Part shown: positions 1 through 7,463 of the stretch, piece after piece
Numbering within the stretch: position 1 is the stretch's first letter
Layout: every line of letters begins with the position of its first letter
Sequence record: MZ443783.1
Length of the DNA: 64,000 nucleotides
Reading direction: 5' to 3' (one strand)
Notes under the pieces: generated by a model
Database searches by the model: none
What the model was told of the DNA's origin: nothing
Seen by the model: the letters and a program-made list of their open reading frames with translations, nothing else
Translations under genes and position numbers: made by a program

Positions 1-2148
1 GAAGGTTCAACCGATGCCGAGTACGTTGCTGGTCAGTTGAAAACGTTCGGCGTTAAGGTCGACCCGAAAACTATCTTCGGTGTGCGTGACGATAAAGACG
101 GTAGCTGGATCGTTAAGCCTAAGATCCGTTACTACGCACCAGACAACGGTGAGCGCTTCTTCGATTATATGTCGATGCTGCGTCGTCGTCTGCCTGACAA
201 AATCGTTGAGAAAGACGGCACCGCGTATTACATCTTTGAGAACAACAAAGAGAACGCGAAGAAGCTGGCAGGCAAGTACGATAAGAAATGGTTCAGCCGT
301 AACAACCAGTTCAAAGTACCTGCGCCAGACGGCCACATGCAGGCGATGGTTATCGTTGACTCCTATCCTGCGATGATGCCAGATCAGGTCGATGACGATG
401 ACGGCTCGAAAGCAATGGCGTTGCAAGCGCGTATGTTCTCTGACGGCATCAAACGTTTCCGTGGTGGTATGCGTCGTAAGATGATGACCATCGTGGGCGT
501 TAACCAGTTGCGTCAGAAGCCTGCTGTGATGTTCGGTAGCCCTGAGTACGAGCCTGGTGGTGACGCGTTGAAGTTCTACTGCTTCGACCGTGACACTCTG
601 ATTCGTACTGACCACGGCGTATTGACTGCACCGCAGATTAAAGCGCTGATGGACGAAGGCAAAGAAGTTGCCGTTGAGTCGTTCGATGGTTATCAGAAAA
701 TCAACGGCGCATGGCTTGTCAATGACGCTCCGTTCCCGTTCGAACTGAATGCTGGTGGTCATGTGTATGTTGGCTCGGCCGAACATCGCCAGTTCACGTT
801 CATGCACGATCTGACTGCCGAAGGTACTCCAGTTCTGCGTCCTGAATGGAACACGCTGAATCAACTGGCGCAGTACCCAGAGCAGAAAGGTCAGTACGCT
901 GGTCTGCGTGTACCACCAGTTAAGGAACTGAAAGAGAATGTTCCTGACGCCTTCGATGAAGCCTCACAACTGGTAAGCAATCTGCTTGGAAACTGCGACC
1001 CTGTTAGCAAGCAACTGCCGCTGGTGACTCACGGTGATACCACCTACGCTGCAAACTGTCTGTTCATCGACACTGTGGGCGAAGACACCGACACTGGTTC
1101 GTTCTCGTTCTGGGTAGAGAAGTTACTGGCCATCGGCGTATTTGCTTACGCTGACGAAAGCGGTATCTGGATTCCAGGTCTGAACAAACACGAACTGGAA
1201 GCGGCTGTAGCGCAGGACGAACTCGGTGCGTTTGCTGGTATCAGTTTTGAAGCGACCTGTCGTCAACGTCAGACTCAAATGCTGACCGTGATTGTCGATC
1301 ACTTCCCTGAGCTGGTACGTTACGTTCTGGACTATCAGTTGCAGACGGGCAAAGACAAAATCTATCTGGCGCCTGAGAACGACTTCGCACAAGCGCTTGA
1401 CCTGATTCTGCACAAAGAGATCGCTGGTTACGACGACTACTATGACCTGCTGATGTTCCAGCTGGCGTATGTCGATGACTGGTACAACTTCGATTCCTCA
1501 ATTCTGCCTGTGCCGTTTACGCTTCGTGCGCTCAACGAACAGCGTGAGTTCTGGGACGTGAACGTTGAAGAAACGTCGGTAGTAATCACCAACGGCTTCG
1601 TCAGTCACAACAGCGACGTGCGTGTGCGACTGGCTTCTCGTGCGGTACCAGAAGGCTGGCCGAAACTGAAAGATGCTCCTGGCATCGTCGGTGAGAAGTC
1701 GGTAACAGTTGAAGGAGGTACTGACCGCTATCGCTTCATCGCTGCTAAGACCATCAAGAACAAGATGGGCGGCATCCCTAACCAGCAGACGTGGTTACGT
1801 TTGTGGGAAGCTGACGGTAACGGTGAAGCTCGCGGTTTCGACCCAGTGTTCGATACGTGGCACTACCTGAAAACTCTGGGTCTGGTCAATGGTAGCCGTA
1901 AGTCGTTCAAGCTGAAAGCTCCGTGCCCGCTCGCATCTGATGTTAAGATGGATTGGGATGACTTCCGTACACTCATCAACGGCAGCAAAGAACAAGTTGT
2001 TGGCGTGTGTAAGAAACTGAAAGTCAAACCTGCGGGCCTGCGTCTGTGGTGCTTCAAGTTCGTTCAGTCCACTAAGGGCAACGAAATGTTGAAGAACGCA
2101 ATCAGTAAGTCTGCCAAGAAGTCTGATGACGACGACGGCGACGAGTAA
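1..2148 (+). CDS. recA: RecA/UvsX recombinase, intein-containing, 5'-truncated by window edge
   Basis: Frame is open from base 1. RecA motifs VIVDSYPAM (Walker B), LQARMFS, VNQLRQKPAVMFGSPEYEPGGDALKFY|SDVRVRL and AAKTIKNK. Confidence 0.93.
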   Translation, partial: EGSTDAEYVAGQLKTFGVKVDPKTIFGVRDDKDGSWIVKPKIRYYAPDNGERFFDYMSMLRRRLPDKIVEKDGTAYYIFENNKENAKKLAGKYDKKWFSRNNQFKVPAPDGHMQAMVIVDSYPAMMPDQVDDDDGSKAMALQARMFSDGIKRFRGGMRRKMMTIVGVNQLRQKPAVMFGSPEYEPGGDALKFYCFDRDTLIRTDHGVLTAPQIKALMDEGKEVAVESFDGYQKINGAWLVNDAPFPFELNAGGHVYVGSAEHRQFTFMHDLTAEGTPVLRPEWNTLNQLAQYPEQKGQYAGLRVPPVKELKENVPDAFDEASQLVSNLLGNCDPVSKQLPLVTHGDTTYAANCLFIDTVGEDTDTGSFSFWVEKLLAIGVFAYADESGIWIPGLNKHELEAAVAQDELGAFAGISFEATCRQRQTQMLTVIVDHFPELVRYVLDYQLQTGKDKIYLAPENDFAQALDLILHKEIAGYDDYYDLLMFQLAYVDDWYNFDSSILPVPFTLRALNEQREFWDVNVEETSVVITNGFVSHNSDVRVRLASRAVPEGWPKLKDAPGIVGEKSVTVEGGTDRYRFIAAKTIKNKMGGIPNQQTWLRLWEADGNGEARGFDPVFDTWHYLKTLGLVNGSRKSFKLKAPCPLASDVKMDWDDFRTLINGSKEQVVGVCKKLKVKPAGLRLWCFKFVQSTKGNEMLKNAISKSAKKSDDDDGDE
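580..1611 (+). mobile_element. Intein (344 aa) in RecA
   Basis: Starts CFDRDTLI (block A), has SAEH (block B), ends NGFVSHN followed by +1 Ser. Removal restores ALKFY-SDVRVRL. Confidence 0.92.
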
Positions 2149-2154
2149 TAAATA

Positions 2155-2180
2155 GGCGGGCTTCGGCTCGCCCTTTCTTT
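2155..2180 (+). terminator. Intrinsic terminator after recA
   Basis: GGCGGGC-TTCG-GCTCGCC then CTTTCTTT. Confidence 0.8.
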
Positions 2181-2190
2181 GGAGAAAGAA

Positions 2191-2619
2191 ATGCGCACTC
2201 AAATCTATACGGCTGATATCGTCAATCTGGAAACAGTGGTCGTTGACGAAGAAGGTCAAGAGACACGCAGTCCGACAATCGTTCCTAATCTCGAAGGCGA
2301 ACGTGATCTGACTGTTAGCACTCTCGGTACTATCATGGCTACCGTGACCGCTGAACCAAATCCTGACGCTCGCATGATCGTTCTGGTGTCACGCGCTCTG
2401 TTCCCTGCTTTCGCAGACCCTGAAGGTGACCTGTTCGATATCTTCGATCCGATCGAACGTGTTGCTGATGTTGTTGCTGGAAACGTCGGCAGCATTCTCG
2501 GTATGCAGGTAGTAATCAACGATAAGTCCGACGACAACGTTCTGGCTATCGCTGATGTTCTTGATACCGAAGCTGGCGTTACTATTCGCACCTTCGGCGC
2601 TGCGCTCGTTCGCGCGTAA
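2191..2619 (+). CDS. Hypothetical protein
   Basis: ATG 2191 after GGAG; no family motif recognised. Confidence 0.8.
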   Translation: MRTQIYTADIVNLETVVVDEEGQETRSPTIVPNLEGERDLTVSTLGTIMATVTAEPNPDARMIVLVSRALFPAFADPEGDLFDIFDPIERVADVVAGNVGSILGMQVVINDKSDDNVLAIADVLDTEAGVTIRTFGAALVRA

Positions 2620-2625
2620 GTAAAC

Positions 2626-2653
2626 TTGTGCGGGATAATGCTTTCCCGCACAA
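2626..2653. repeat. Perfect 10-bp inverted repeat
   Basis: TTGTGCGGGA-N8-TCCCGCACAA. Confidence 0.85.
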
Positions 2654-2660
2654 TCCCTCT

Positions 2661-2713
2661 CTCGATAGGCAATACGCCACGAGAAAACAAACCACTCGAT
2701 AGGCAATACGCCA
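2661..2713. repeat. 19-bp direct repeat, two copies, 34-bp period
   Basis: CTCGATAGGCAATACGCCA at 2661-2679 and 2695-2713. Confidence 0.95.
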
Positions 2714-2723
2714 GGAGTAATGT

Positions 2724-3425
2724 ATGAAAAAGATTCAACACGTAACACTTCCGACCGATGCACTCAACGGACTCATTCATGGCTATTACCACCATAGCAA
2801 AACCACTGATGAATTTTGCAGATCGTTGATCTATATTGACGTTACCGACCGCAGCGCCTCAGATGCGCTGTATGCTATATTGAAACGTGAGCCGACAAAA
2901 GGCATTGTCCCTATGGGATATGATTGCTTACGAGAAGCACGTGGGCACACTGCTCCAGCACAACTCGCAATCGTATTGTCCAACAACCTGTTGCATATAG
3001 ATAATACGAAGATGGCTGGAGGCGTACAGGCCATCTTTAACGCTCTGGCCAGAACCACGCACACCAACGATACTCAAATAACTGTGTACGGCGAGCCTGG
3101 AGTAAGTAAGATTCTCAACATAATGCGCGACATTCAATATAAAGAATATATTAACGCGCCTGAATCCGACATTGTGCTTGGCGACTTTAACCTTGAGTCG
3201 AACATGACTATAGACCATTTCGTTCACATGGCTATCGATCCTAAGTTCGAAGAAGCTATCCGCAATTCTCCTGCCACAGAATTTAAACTGGGCAGCAGTT
3301 TCATGTTCATGCACCCAGATGAATTGACTAAGGTTGTACGCATGGTCCGCCGTTGCAGTAAAATCTGCATCATGCACCCTGACATTCATCGCTATTACTT
3401 TGAGAACGTAATCTGTAAATACTAA
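2724..3425 (+). CDS. Hypothetical protein, paralog of 4575..5342
   Basis: GGAG RBS. C-terminal FMHPDEL..KICIMHPDIHRYYFE matches the pattern in 4575. Confidence 0.8.
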   Translation: MKKIQHVTLPTDALNGLIHGYYHHSKTTDEFCRSLIYIDVTDRSASDALYAILKREPTKGIVPMGYDCLREARGHTAPAQLAIVLSNNLLHIDNTKMAGGVQAIFNALARTTHTNDTQITVYGEPGVSKILNIMRDIQYKEYINAPESDIVLGDFNLESNMTIDHFVHMAIDPKFEEAIRNSPATEFKLGSSFMFMHPDELTKVVRMVRRCSKICIMHPDIHRYYFENVICKY

Positions 3426-3473
3426 TCACCAAACCGAACACATTGCTGTGTGTAGTCTAGCCCGACTTGGGCA

Positions 3474-3504
3474 GGGGAGAGCCGGATGGCCTCCCCATTT
3501 TTTT
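3474..3504 (+). terminator. Intrinsic terminator
   Basis: GGGGAG(A)GCC-GGAT-GGCCTCCCC followed by ATTTTTTT. Confidence 0.75.
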
Positions 3505-3527
3505 ATCTACACGCTGCGGAGAACAGT

Positions 3528-4529
3528 ATGTCTAAAACGAAGTCAACTCCACAGACCTTCCTCGACCTATTCTTAAAGGATGTTAAGCTCTTTCTGCCAA
3601 GGTTCGACAAAGGACTGGACGCGTACTTATTGAAGTGCAAAGGCAAGCCGGGTCCTTATGGCGTATCGCTTCATCAATACATGAAGTGGCTAAATCCTGT
3701 AGCGCGACTTCCTGCCAACGCAAGCGAAGTGTCTATCATCACATCAGGCTACCTGCATTACTTTTGGCAACTCGCTAAACCTAACTTTGTGTTGGAGCCT
3801 GTGCTTGTCAATCATTTGGTTGAGTCTGTGTTGCCTGACGAACTCCCGGCTGAGATTCTTCAACGTCTGCCTTACTGGAGTCAGTGGATTACGTTGCCTC
3901 TGCATCTGGTAAGCAAAGACAATATTCTGGATCTGGACTTCGATGGTGCTTTCGTTGGGTATACATCAATCGACAACAGACCTGCGCTTGTCCTTGCGGC
4001 ACCGTTTGTTTCCAACAATCAAAACATGCGCTCGAACGACTTCACACCGTTCGTTACATCGCATGTATTTCTTGATGCTCCTGTACGTCCAGAGTTTTTG
4101 GTAAGGAACAGCCACATACTCAACGTTGATGCAGACGCAATGAGCAAAGAAGCATACACCGTATTGATAATGAACATTCACCACTTCCTGGTGAAAGTGA
4201 TCAACTGTGTCATGTATATCTGCTCGCAACAGGAAGCACTGTATCAGGAAGGTCATTCTCAACCTAAGCCGCAGCGTCTAGGTAAGAGCTATCGCATCAC
4301 GCCACCGAAAGATGATCGCATGATCACGGTGGGCGCCGAGATGACCAAGATACTCAAAGACTTCGAAGCAGAAGTCGAATCGTGTGCTCGCGCTTTCAAT
4401 GGGCGTAAGCCGCATATACGAAAAGCGCACTACCACCACTTCTGGACAGGACCGAAAGTAGGAGTTCGTACCCTTGTCTGTAAGTGGTTGCCACCAAGTA
4501 TTGTTCGCGGCACCATCGTAGAGCAATAA
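3528..4529 (+). CDS. AcrVA2-like protein (anti-CRISPR/FinQ-related family)
   Basis: ATG 3528 after GGAG. LPDELPAEILQRLPYW and C-terminal KPHIRKAHYHHFWTG..KWLPPSIV match AcrVA2 motifs as recalled. Confidence 0.7.
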   Translation: MSKTKSTPQTFLDLFLKDVKLFLPRFDKGLDAYLLKCKGKPGPYGVSLHQYMKWLNPVARLPANASEVSIITSGYLHYFWQLAKPNFVLEPVLVNHLVESVLPDELPAEILQRLPYWSQWITLPLHLVSKDNILDLDFDGAFVGYTSIDNRPALVLAAPFVSNNQNMRSNDFTPFVTSHVFLDAPVRPEFLVRNSHILNVDADAMSKEAYTVLIMNIHHFLVKVINCVMYICSQQEALYQEGHSQPKPQRLGKSYRITPPKDDRMITVGAEMTKILKDFEAEVESCARAFNGRKPHIRKAHYHHFWTGPKVGVRTLVCKWLPPSIVRGTIVEQ

Positions 4530-4574
4530 CTTTTATCTCAACTCCACGTATGGGCGTTATGCCCGGAGGCTATT

Positions 4575-5342
4575 ATGAAATCTCGTGTACAACATGCGTA
4601 TATTCCTGATATGGAATCGTTTGACCCTTACGTCCGCTCTCTGTGCCATATGGCGCGAGCACTGGACACACCGAACTCTAACTACGGTAAGTTGAAACGT
4701 GTCGTGATCATCGGTACGTCGAAGCGTGTGGTTGAGGCATACGTTAAGCAGTTACTCAACACAAACACGCTGCCGCACACTCTCATTTGTTTTGGCGTAG
4801 ACGAACCGCCTATCAGTCACCGTGATTATACCTACGCTGGCGCCCACGTTGTGCTGATGCACGATCTGACCTACGTTGATAGCGGCACAATGGACAAGGT
4901 CGCCACGCGTGTGATTGAAATCATCGACAGCCTCAAACAGAAGCCCGGCGAAACAGAACTTAAAAATTCCGAGCTGTCTATGGTGTATTCGAATCCTCTG
5001 CTGTGGCGATCCATTATCGACTACGGTGCTTCCGTTTCTCTGCGCATGAATGGTAGCAATATTGAATACCGTAGCGGTCTGGTGTCGTCTATTGGCTTCG
5101 ATGCGTTGTTACGTTGTGAAAGCAATGCAGACTACCATGAACTTCGCGCTGATAAGATTACGATCGGTCTGGAGTTCTTCTGCGTACACACGGACTACCT
5201 GCTGTCAAAAGTACACAACCTGCTGTGGTCGCTCGCTTGTGACGACTGCAAATTCAAAAAGACGCACCGTATTATCTTCCATGAAGACTTCCGACGCTTA
5301 TTCTTCGAAGAATATCTCTTGAGGGACTTCCAGGGCTTTTAA
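4575..5342 (+). CDS. Hypothetical protein, paralog of 2724..3425
   Basis: GGAGG RBS. C-terminal FCVHTDYL..HRIIFHEDFRRLFFE. Confidence 0.8.
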   Translation: MKSRVQHAYIPDMESFDPYVRSLCHMARALDTPNSNYGKLKRVVIIGTSKRVVEAYVKQLLNTNTLPHTLICFGVDEPPISHRDYTYAGAHVVLMHDLTYVDSGTMDKVATRVIEIIDSLKQKPGETELKNSELSMVYSNPLLWRSIIDYGASVSLRMNGSNIEYRSGLVSSIGFDALLRCESNADYHELRADKITIGLEFFCVHTDYLLSKVHNLLWSLACDDCKFKKTHRIIFHEDFRRLFFEEYLLRDFQGF

Positions 5343-5415
5343 GATTATTCTTAGCCTGCTCTCTAATTTCAATATGTTGGCAAGTAGTGCTGACATATCG
5401 TTATTGGAGAATAAC

Positions 5416-5676
5416 ATGTGCGAACGTAGCCATTTGCGGTTGAAGTACCTCGCACGGTCATCTGGCTGGTGCAATAATAAAGTAAACGCTTGTAGTGAGC
5501 GGAAGGCGAAGAATGTACAATGCGAAGAATTTTTGGCAGCGACCAAAGATTGCCGCAGCGAACAGAAGTCGTCCAGTGTTGTTTCATTCTTCAAAGGTCA
5601 TGAGCTGGTTGGTCAGGCTATATGGCATGAGATAGAGGGAGACAGCACACTTCAATTCCGGTTGCTACTTGCTTAA
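5416..5676 (+). CDS. Small Cys-rich hypothetical protein
   Basis: ATG 5416 after TGGAGA; terminator follows. Confidence 0.55.
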   Translation: MCERSHLRLKYLARSSGWCNNKVNACSERKAKNVQCEEFLAATKDCRSEQKSSSVVSFFKGHELVGQAIWHEIEGDSTLQFRLLLA

Positions 5677-5682
5677 CGACAG

Positions 5683-5723
5683 AGGGCCCATCAGAGTAAT
5701 ATCTGGTGGGCCCTTTCTTCTTT
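5683..5723 (+). terminator. Intrinsic terminator
   Basis: AGGGCCCATCAGA/TCTGGTGGGCCCT stem, then TTCTTCTTT. Confidence 0.75.
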
Positions 5724-5774
5724 CTATGCTAATTTTTAACGTCATTACACACCAACCGACTTCGGGGTATCACT

Positions 5775-7463
5775 ATGTCTTTGATTAAGATCGAAGGCGT
5801 CCAATCATTATCTGCGCCTACCAAAGCCCAGAAAGACGCCGCAATTTATATGTTTGGTTCTAAGGGCCATTCAATCGTCGCCGTACTCGACAAGTTCAGT
5901 CGTGTAAAAGAACTGCGTACTGCCCACATTGACGGTCTGCTCAAGCTGATGAAAGAAGGTGAAGATGACGAGATCGTCAAGTTCACTGCATCGGCTGCTG
6001 GTAAGAAATCTCTGGCTGCGGCCAAGCAATTCGCTACAGCCAAAACTCTGGCTATGTCCATCAAAGCGCTGAAACTGATTCGCGTTCCGATGAAGTGGAT
6101 CGCTGGTCACTCTGATGCAGCAGCGGCCCGTATCACCGAGACGAAAGAAATTCGCGCTCGTAAGACTGCTGGCAACAAGCCAGAGAAGCCAATCAAACTC
6201 GATAATCCTCATGCGCCAGAAGCGACAACGGCCGAACAGACCAAGCAGAACTCTGCCTTGAGCAAAATCTACAAGCTGCCTAAAAACGGCAATGGTTATG
6301 ACAATAAACTGTCTCCGCAGTGGAACGCCCTGATTAAAACAATCAACACTACCTTCAAAGGGATGTTCGCTGCCAAGTGGATCAAAGCCGAAGGTGCTAT
6401 TCGCATCACGCCTAAAGGTCCTGGGTATCGCTCAATCCCTGAAGCCTTCTTGGGTGCTATCCCTGAAGACAATAGCTGGCAGATGTATACCGTGTCACCG
6501 CGCGGGCAGGTTGAAGGCTACGCTATCGGCAATCAACTGACTATGGCTTCTGTTGCTATATTCATGCGTGACTTCATGGCGACCAAGAAGACTCCTGATG
6601 TTGCAGCCATCAATAAGATGGTTGCTGGCGCTACTGCGTTCAACACAGAAGTCCTGCACACCGAAGAGAACAGCCCAGAACTGAAAGAACTGGGTGATGC
6701 TCAACGCAAGCTGGACGCAGAAGGTGTAGCAAAAGGCGCCATCAACTCTGTTACCAAGATCACTTCGGCTAACGTGTCTAAGATTACACGTGGAGCGCAG
6801 ATTAAGATCGAAGAACAGTTGAACAGCAAGCTGGGGAATGTTCTGTATAACGCAAACTTCCGTGAGAAAGGCACCTACCCAGCGCTCGATGGTTACCTGT
6901 TTGAAATGACTCAGGCGACTAAGCATAGCGGTTCGGGCAACAAGTACGCAGCGTTCGCACTGATTCCTCCTCAGAAAGGTACTCAACTTGCAGGTCAGAC
7001 TTGGCGTGTAGCGGCATTTAACATGGGCCGCCAGACTGCCACTGACCTGATTGATATCGGTGCTAAGTTCTCTCTGGCGAAAGTGAAGTCTGCTATCAAA
7101 CAGATTGACGGCGTTTCTTCTGCAAAGTACACACCGTCAGGTAAGTCGCCTGACTCTTTGGTGGATGAAATCGCAGAAACCCCTGCTCGTAAAATCGCAG
7201 CAATGCCTTTACAGGGACGCGAAGAATACTTCAACGCCCTGAACGCTGTCATTCAGCGTAACATGCCTCACGCAAACGTGATTGTGTCTTCTGATGGCCT
7301 GACGATAACAAAAGGCAGTAAGATGCACACCGTGAGCCTGACTGATAAAGGCTGGTTCATTAAGACTGGCGCCACAGGCAAACCAAAACGTATCGGCGTA
7401 ACGTTCGATATTGTTGACCTGCTCGGCATGATCGACAAGAGCATTCTCAAACCTAAAGCGTAA
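5775..7463 (+). CDS. Large Lys/Ala-rich hypothetical protein
   Basis: 562-aa ORF with highly biased codon usage, between two terminators. Confidence 0.85.
   Translation: MSLIKIEGVQSLSAPTKAQKDAAIYMFGSKGHSIVAVLDKFSRVKELRTAHIDGLLKLMKEGEDDEIVKFTASAAGKKSLAAAKQFATAKTLAMSIKALKLIRVPMKWIAGHSDAAAARITETKEIRARKTAGNKPEKPIKLDNPHAPEATTAEQTKQNSALSKIYKLPKNGNGYDNKLSPQWNALIKTINTTFKGMFAAKWIKAEGAIRITPKGPGYRSIPEAFLGAIPEDNSWQMYTVSPRGQVEGYAIGNQLTMASVAIFMRDFMATKKTPDVAAINKMVAGATAFNTEVLHTEENSPELKELGDAQRKLDAEGVAKGAINSVTKITSANVSKITRGAQIKIEEQLNSKLGNVLYNANFREKGTYPALDGYLFEMTQATKHSGSGNKYAAFALIPPQKGTQLAGQTWRVAAFNMGRQTATDLIDIGAKFSLAKVKSAIKQIDGVSSAKYTPSGKSPDSLVDEIAETPARKIAAMPLQGREEYFNALNAVIQRNMPHANVIVSSDGLTITKGSKMHTVSLTDKGWFIKTGATGKPKRIGVTFDIVDLLGMIDKSILKPKA

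Follow-up and report, generated by a model that had tools for sequence, protein, structure and literature searches.

Erwinia phage pEa_SNUABM_28 (MZ443783.1, Alexandravirus, 267,143 bp) carries in its last 64 kb, here denoted the window, three consecutive genes (denoted A, B and C; Table 1) that a preliminary description had read as one module, in which two diverged paralogs, A and C, bracket an AcrVA2-like gene, B, and provide its product with adaptor or regulatory subunits. With moderate confidence, we read positions 2724-5716 as a recombination-shuffled patch of accessory genes downstream of the SSB and UvsX genes, and not as an obligate three-subunit system. Comparison of related phages showed that A, B and C are gained, lost and exchanged independently. 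The adaptor role is not supported: each gene occurs without the others, the three do not co-vary beyond the phage backbone, and AcrVA2 itself works alone in a foreign host (bioRxiv 10.1101/2022.11.29.518452).

Gene content and divergence of the A, B and C locus

All three genes are found together in 16 Alexandravirus isolates, in Sasquatchvirus (Y3 and pEp_SNUABM_52) and in Snuvirus. Six Alexandraviruses (pEa_SNUABM_30, 23/31 and 40/3/20) carry B and C without A, while Yoloswag, pEa_SNUABM_5 and locus L013 carry A and B without C. Locus L014 has two A-like copies followed by B. An A-like gene directly follows UvsX, with no B, in Yersinia phage fHe-Yen9-02 and in loci L015 and L133, the last of which is otherwise collinear with Yoloswag. 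Salmondvirus JA13 has an A-like gene after RecA and a B gene about 155 kb away, beside a RelA/SpoT-like gene; the Salmondviruses JA11, JA29 and JA33 have an A-like gene and no B-like gene in a tblastn organism tally. C-like genes without B occur in unrelated contexts (L011, L012 and L134), and B stands alone in RisingSun, FBKp24 and Asesino. The gene that follows the A-like gene in fHe-Yen9-02 was considered as a further member of the A/C family and rejected.

A gene-neighbourhood analysis of AcrVA2 homologs had been proposed as a check on the module, and conserved linkage to A/C genes proved to be confined to one clade. An A/C neighbour is present at 15 of 80 IMG/VR loci with a B homolog, all 15 in a single jumbo-phage clade, and at none of the 65 AcrVA2-like loci outside it. 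Across the 47 B lineages represented by these 65 loci there is no common neighbour family of any kind.

The divergence of the three genes was measured in the 12 genomes that carry all of them. Mean pairwise identity is 46% for A, 50% for B and 67% for C, as compared with 85% for UvsX. Mantel correlations between A and B (r 0.17), A and C (0.28) and B and C (0.32) are low next to those between C and UvsX (0.73) and between UvsX and the acidic gene N142, which lies between UvsX and A (0.77); the divergence of A, B and C does not co-vary beyond the phage backbone. The ratio of nonsynonymous to synonymous divergence (dN/dS) is 0.05-0.15 for A, 0.05-0.15 for B and 0.04-0.26 for C, and therefore all three genes are functional and under purifying selection; gene-wide values gave no sign of relaxed or positive selection in any of them. 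Within a genome pair, synonymous divergence can change abruptly from one gene to its neighbour; for example, it is 0.50 in B and 2.1 in C in one pair, and 0.53 in C with B saturated in another. These jumps point to recombination breakpoints between the genes and to reassortment of old alleles.

In these respects the patch is like the hypervariable accessory ("moron" or counter-defence) regions of phages, with swapped divergent alleles, presence and absence of genes, purifying selection within alleles, synonymous jumps between neighbours and, in a related contig, an Acb1-family gene a few genes upstream. Unlike such regions, it has only one gene, B, that resembles a known counter-defence protein (PADLOC); the patch may serve counter-defence. 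The Acb1-family gene lies at 120-590 of locus L133, a Yoloswag-like metagenome contig of 258 kb; it is marked PF23474 (Acb1) and PF13563 (2',5' RNA ligase family), stands a few genes upstream of SSB, RecA and the A-like gene, and is likely a counter-defence gene of the same neighbourhood. The layout of paralog, AcrVA2-like gene and paralog should not be annotated as a three-component system.

Two rearranged loci were also observed. At 6001-7131 of L010 (GCA_007314735.1, an Alexandravirus-like contig of 266 kb) one 376-aa (amino acid) protein fills the slots of B and C. Its front matches B, its back matches the second half of C, and a single in-frame deletion, with loss of the HxR..H residues discussed below, accounts for it. 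Similarity between B and C does not explain this chimera, because B shares no homology with A or C (E above 0.1 in hhalign). At L014, tandem A-like genes (2135-2851 and 3002-3856) lie directly before the B homolog; in the second (284 aa) the A profile matches the first ~110 residues only, at E 1.1e-8, and the C profile does not match.

Predicted functions of B, A and C

The middle gene was correctly recognised in the preliminary description as AcrVA2-like. B as a single sequence matches AcrVA2 (PDB 7CI1) at E 7e-5 (phmmer), and a profile of 16 relatives matches residues 57-317 of the 323 residues of AcrVA2 at E 6.6e-19; B also matches phrog_6160 (E 3e-49). The Pfam copy searched, from which the AcrVA2-like model PF26125 seems to be missing, gave no match for B and none for the L013 homolog, which a precomputed table does mark as PF26125. 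The HxR..H residues and the tryptophan that follows them are each present in 15 of the 15 B homologs covering those columns, and the column equivalent to W79 of AcrVA2 holds W in 15 homologs and Y in 2. In AcrVA2, H286, R288 and H291 are required for activity, and W79 and D89 contribute (bioRxiv 10.1101/2022.11.29.518452). By these sequence comparisons B was shown to be a bona fide member of the AcrVA2/FinQ family that keeps the HxR..H residues needed for AcrVA2 activity. Scanning the whole 267-kb genome with hidden Markov models (HMMs) found one AcrVA2-like gene.

In the published mechanism, AcrVA2 binding to the N-terminus of nascent Cas12a leads to loss of the Cas12a mRNA, and AcrVA2 is active alone when expressed from a plasmid in Pseudomonas, a foreign host; FinQ is a homolog, and plasmids and megaphages widely carry orthologs, for the most part in settings that lack Cas12a (bioRxiv 10.1101/2022.11.29.518452). 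B aligns to most of the length of AcrVA2 and retains, besides HxR..H, the tryptophan whose mutation weakens it. The two differ in sequence, with low identity and no conservation of the part presumed to bind the target, and in setting, since B lies in a lytic jumbo phage next to replication genes whereas AcrVA2 lies beside AcrVA1 in a prophage anti-CRISPR locus. The C-terminus of B is best conserved (58% mean pairwise identity) and residues 1-30 and 151-210 are most variable (15-20%), the same pattern of conserved C-terminus and variable N-terminal and middle parts as in the AcrVA2 family. To our knowledge, Erwinia amylovora has no Cas12a, so that B, like most AcrVA2 orthologs, would be found on a mobile element in a host without it.

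By analogy, B would act alone, as AcrVA2 does. Through its variable N-terminal and middle regions it would bind one specific protein, of the host or of a rival element, while this is still a nascent chain, and binding would lead to loss of the mRNA of the bound protein. The target is presumably not Cas12a, if the host indeed lacks it. B adds a well-supported AcrVA2/FinQ-family gene to the lytic jumbo phages of a plant pathogen that, as far as we know, is without Cas12a, and it agrees with the published proposal that members of the family direct this kind of mRNA silencing against other targets. Its deeply diverged alleles in near-identical genomic backgrounds offer a natural series on which part of the protein sets target choice.

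Two B homologs elsewhere deserve mention. RisingSun gp126 (L023, 3764-4765) is annotated as "putative mycothiosynthase", which, given its match to the B family, looks like a mis-annotation. In Dickeya phage JA13 (L020, 3854-5478) the AcrVA2-like gene overlaps the start of a (p)ppGpp synthetase/hydrolase-like gene.

For A and C, AlphaFold models were built on a 46-sequence alignment of both subfamilies. The A model has a predicted local distance difference test (pLDDT) score of 91.3 and a predicted template modelling (pTM) score of 0.82, and the C model scores 89.4 and 0.84, respectively. Both are compact, with two alpha/beta lobes. Foldseek comparison of C with the PDB gave superfamily 2 (SF2) helicase cores as nearest matches (NS3-type, DDX21, DbpA, RIG-I, HrpB and the reverse-gyrase helicase domain), with E 3e-4 to 2e-2 and probability up to 0.99; the template modelling (TM) score is only ~0.3, which may reflect differently oriented lobes. 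Matches of A were weaker and mixed: a flavodoxin-like acetylhydrolase at E 3e-3, and the DEAD-box proteins DbpA, CshA, Dbp5 and eIF4A, with helicase matches at E 7e-3 to 2e-2. Among the predicted viral structures of BFVD, the A model first found family members (TM 0.71-0.99), and after these helicases, origin-binding proteins and terminase ATPase lobes. In the models, then, the A/C fold appears as a compact pair of RecA-like lobes, weakly closest to an SF2 helicase core.

In their predicted structures A and C have two alpha/beta lobes, weakly like those of the SF2 cores (DbpA, CshA, DDX21, eIF4A, Dbp5 and RadD, and further RIG-I-like, DEAH/RHA and viral NS3-type helicases). They are much smaller (233 and 255 aa, against normally ~370-450 aa for an SF2 core) and, unlike the helicases, are without Walker A (motif I) and Walker B/DExD (motif II). 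No helicase-family sequence match was found for either in Pfam, NCBIfam, PHROG or PDB. The likeness is one of fold and not of family membership.

The preliminary description had seen in C a degenerate Walker A/B pair of the DnaC/IstB type. Part of this stood: the predicted fold is of the P-loop-NTPase type, and in the C model VVIIG-TSKR falls on a strand-loop-helix and HVVLMHD on the end of a strand, the places expected of Walker motifs. The motifs themselves did not. Walker A (GxxxxGK[ST], including the relaxed [AG] form) and Walker B (four hydrophobic residues followed by D[DE]) are absent from A and C, and the positions are not conserved across the family: G47, S49, K50 and R51 of C are conserved within the C subfamily only, column 47 of the 46-sequence alignment holds D in 22 and G in 20 sequences, column 50 holds E in 14 and K in 11, and MHD of C corresponds to SNN in A. 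The likeness to DnaC/IstB failed, since no AAA+ loader is among the top 50 PDB fold matches of A or C and no sequence match to such proteins was found in Pfam or PDB; A and C have in common with these ATPases only a general alpha/beta architecture of the P-loop-NTPase kind, in which a strand-loop-helix occupies the noted position.

Searches of A, C and their alignments against Pfam, PHROGs, NCBIfam, PADLOC and PDB, by sequence and profile, gave chance-level matches only, and no description of the family turned up there, in agreement with the earlier impression that it is undescribed. The 46-sequence alignment has no invariant column, and in joint alignments of 23 and 21 sequences the only invariant residues are P, L, S, G and F. 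The isoelectric point (pI) of A and C is ~6.6. A combined A/C profile found only 27 clusters among 1.84 billion representative proteins; those clusters that were traced to their contigs derive from phage records or from contigs of metagenomes, and many of these sources measure 170-270 kb. Members of the C family are present in 13 jumbo-phage genomes of IMG/VR and, among 185,579 genomes of bacteria and archaea, on a single 9-kb contig binned into a metagenome-assembled genome (MAG). This contig (L119; JAVWLC010000071.1, 9.2 kb, labelled MAG: Raoultibacter sp.), with 60% identity to the C family, is most likely a mis-binned jumbo-phage fragment.

The models suggest that A and C belong to a miniature RecA-like family, shaped like a helicase core, in which binding of nucleoside triphosphates (NTPs) may have been lost. 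Each would act separately as a non-catalytic binding protein (a pseudo-NTPase), most likely sequestering or modulating, during infection, a protein or nucleic acid of the host or the phage. As an unannotated family with a confident predicted fold, a motif-less helicase-like core of half the usual size, A/C is a candidate for structural and expression work.

Several observations weigh against an accessory patch of independent genes. Inside the clade every B at this locus adjoins at least one A/C gene (about 20 distinct genomes in five genera), and in Alexandravirus, Sasquatchvirus and Snuvirus C always lies directly downstream of B, with a spacer of 44-49 nucleotides (nt). There may accordingly be a functional link between B and C specific to this clade, although common descent and synteny account for the same pattern. 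Assignment of a helicase-like fold is itself weak, given the Foldseek values reported above for C, and for A the flavodoxin-like hydrolase matches compete with it. The functions that we propose for A and C are, moreover, generic.

We considered whether the A-like subfamily might instead be an accessory factor of the phage recombination module, acting with UvsX and SSB, its proximity to B being incidental; A would then be helicase-like but devoid of the motifs, in loose analogy to the helicase-like proteins with which RecA-family recombinases work. Wherever flank and backbone suffice to judge, the A-like gene directly follows UvsX, with or without N142 (Alexandravirus, Sasquatchvirus, Snuvirus, Yoloswagvirus, Rivsvirus, Salmondvirus, fHe-Yen9-02, L014, L015 and L133), and in the window A lies on the UvsX side of a terminator-like hairpin. 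The A model also matches RadD, an SF2-type DNA-repair protein, with probability 0.97-0.99 and a root-mean-square deviation (rmsd) of 4.5-4.8 Å over ~140 columns (best 4.5 Å, 136 columns), a weak fold match. However, the six Alexandraviruses without A keep UvsX, N142, B and C. Few genes of the region diverge as fast as A, its mean pairwise identity being little more than half that of UvsX, and such a rate is uncommon in a core partner of recombination. Since the phages compared are all syntenic relatives, the adjacency may be inherited and not functional. We regard a role of A in recombination as unlikely.

A second alternative is that A, C or both are helicase-core-like cofactors of the AcrVA2-like protein in this clade, for example RNA- or ribosome-handling partners that give specificity to, or execute, the mRNA loss triggered by B. 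This would agree with the bracketing of B by the only two A/C family members of the genome, with the A/C neighbour of every B at this locus in the clade, with the constant spacing of B and C and the lack of a terminator between them, with the tandem A-like copies directly before B at L014 and with the resemblance of the A/C fold to DEAD-box-type cores; the mRNA-degrading machinery of the AcrVA2 mechanism is also still to be named (bioRxiv 10.1101/2022.11.29.518452). The independence of AcrVA2 from any partner in a heterologous host speaks against it (bioRxiv 10.1101/2022.11.29.518452), as do the absence of A/C neighbours and of any common partner family at the 65 loci outside the clade, the finding of A, B and C each without the others, the Salmondviruses with an A-like and no B-like gene in the tally, and the separation of the two genes in JA13. 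Furthermore, the allelic classes do not co-vary, the near-neutral pI provides no basic nucleic-acid-binding signature, and a hairpin with a T-run separates A from B. A cofactor role is in our judgement quite unlikely.

One specific form of this idea, a miniature helicase-core-like pseudo-NTPase recruited by Enterobacterales jumbo phages as an RNA- or ribosome-handling cofactor of their AcrVA2-like protein, we consider decidedly improbable; it keeps a small place because A and C are helicase-like in predicted shape and the decay machinery of AcrVA2 has not been found. If true, it would give a first handle on the machinery that destroys the mRNA of the nascent chains recognised by AcrVA2-family proteins.

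A and C as very distant paralogs

A last alternative, that the resemblance of A and C reflects chance or composition and the bracket arrangement is meaningless, is very improbable and was refuted by the profile-profile alignment and its controls, even though A and C show no significant similarity in pairwise BLASTP, in which the best match spans 17 residues at E 0.089. Because of this lack of pairwise signal, family profiles were needed. Relatives were collected from 5.8 billion proteins (16 clusters for A and 27 for C) and more distant copies were added from related phage records, giving alignments of 18 sequences for the A family (A1) and 19 for the C family (A2, mean column identity 71%). 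A word-indexed protein search with the merged A/C profile yielded only two further relatives.

Aligned with hhalign, the two families match with a probability of 96%, E 1.4e-9 and a score of 68 over 220 columns that are collinear end to end, whereas 22 controls with reversed or shuffled columns scored at most 19, with E at least 0.067. Reciprocal HMM matches also connect the families; after its own members, the A-family HMM finds members of the C family (E 2.7e-5 to 0.08). A joint MAFFT alignment is collinear, and in the two confident AlphaFold models strands and helices follow one another in the same order. One protein in BFVD, whose 252 aa agree with the length of the C family, matches the A model with TM 0.77, E 4e-9 and 14% identity, and is, judging from the predicted structures, a probable C-family member. 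Profile alignment and structure prediction thus bore out the paralogy: at the level of sequence profiles, A and C are confirmed as true but very distant paralogs. HMM scanning of the whole genome found no family members other than these two.

The motifs on which the paralogy was first noticed are largely as described. The middle motif, VL-x3-L-x2-[IV]D-x3-M, is exact in A (residue 84) and in C (residue 93). Both motifs at the C-terminus are genuine, although each is one residue out of register in A, and they fit both proteins when written as F-x(1,2)-[MV]H[PT]D-x-L and H[PE]D-x2-R-x2-FE. Each of the three is found only in A and C among the 187 open reading frames (ORFs) of at least 100 aa in the window.

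A rough neighbour-joining tree separates A-like and C-like genes into two deep clades. For this reason we take the duplication to be old and not a local event around B; A-like and C-like genes were shown to form a single small family confined to jumbo phages, with two subfamilies of old origin.

Neighbouring genes and transcription signals

The features of the region are listed in Table 1. Over positions 2100-5800 the window matches the pEa_SNUABM_28 record at 100% identity.

Table 1. Genes and hairpins at the A, B and C locus, in window coordinates (aa, amino acids; ORF, open reading frame; CDS, coding sequence)
Feature	Position	Strand	Size	Remarks
N142	2179..2619 (GenBank start 2191)	+	146 aa	acidic, pI 4.05; between UvsX and A
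Gene A	2724..3425	+	233 aa	ORF; GenBank CDS QZE58808, hypothetical protein
Terminator-like hairpin, then run of seven T	3474..3504	+		between A and B
Gene B	3528..4529	+	333 aa	ORF; GenBank QZE58809, hypothetical protein; AcrVA2/FinQ family by sequence comparison
Gene C	4575..5342	+	255 aa	ORF; GenBank CDS QZE58810, hypothetical protein
Small gene	5416..5676	+	86 aa	GenBank CDS QZE58811; last gene of predicted B-C transcription unit
Strong intrinsic-terminator-like hairpin	5681..5716	+		end of B-C-small gene unit

Upstream of A are an SSB-like gene, a UvsX/RecA-like gene (Pfam RecA, 1.9e-23; PHROG UvsX-like, 5e-47) and N142, and this conserved anchor of SSB, UvsX and N142 precedes the variable patch. 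N142 is at the same position in all Alexandravirus, Y3 and Snuvirus relatives and has no family match in Pfam, PHROGs, PADLOC or NCBIfam. For the small gene, PADLOC and NCBIfam gave no match and no known relatives were found; in most related phages C is followed by an equivalent gene of 86-100 aa. A longer reading frame of B is possible from an ATG at 3486. We kept the start given by GenBank and the preliminary description, most likely the correct one, because the upstream ATG lies inside the hairpin with its seven T and GGAG precedes position 3528.

The hairpin between A and B (RNA fold -18 kcal/mol, z -2.4) would terminate transcription. A hairpin with a T-run precedes B in 14 of 17 relatives, the ones that lack A among them, and is never found in the spacer between B and C. 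We therefore predict two transcription units, UvsX-N142-A and B-C-small gene. The hairpin at the end of the second has 15 pairs, 8 of them G-C, and folds at -28.1 kcal/mol (z -6.0).

Two further hairpins were noted. One, at 2626-2653 after the N142 stop, has 10 bp and folds at -18.1 kcal/mol (z -7.0), with no T-run on the + strand; the other, at 5360-5410 between C and the small gene, folds at -24.6 kcal/mol (79-nt stretch; z -4.3), also with no T-run. Just upstream of A an exact 19-nt direct repeat occupies 2661-2679 and 2695-2713, the starts being 34 nt apart. It is unique in the window (0.01 matches expected) and occurs as one copy at the same place in pEa_SNUABM_35 and in none of 31 other loci; it may be a regulatory site. 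Rfam returned no known RNA in 2000-6000, and a scan for sigma-70 promoters was at background (7 found against 5.2 expected).

The UvsX/RecA-like gene (37-2148, cut at the left edge of the window) contains a 344-aa insertion at 580-1611. The first residue of the insertion is Cys, its last two are His-Asn and the next residue after it is Ser, an intein-like signature; the insertion itself has no match in Pfam or PDB. RecA of Dickeya phage JA13 (501 aa) shows 68-71% identity in the parts flanking the insertion and is without exactly that stretch, and the UvsX homolog of L015 (1197 aa) is marked PF14890, Intein_splicing.

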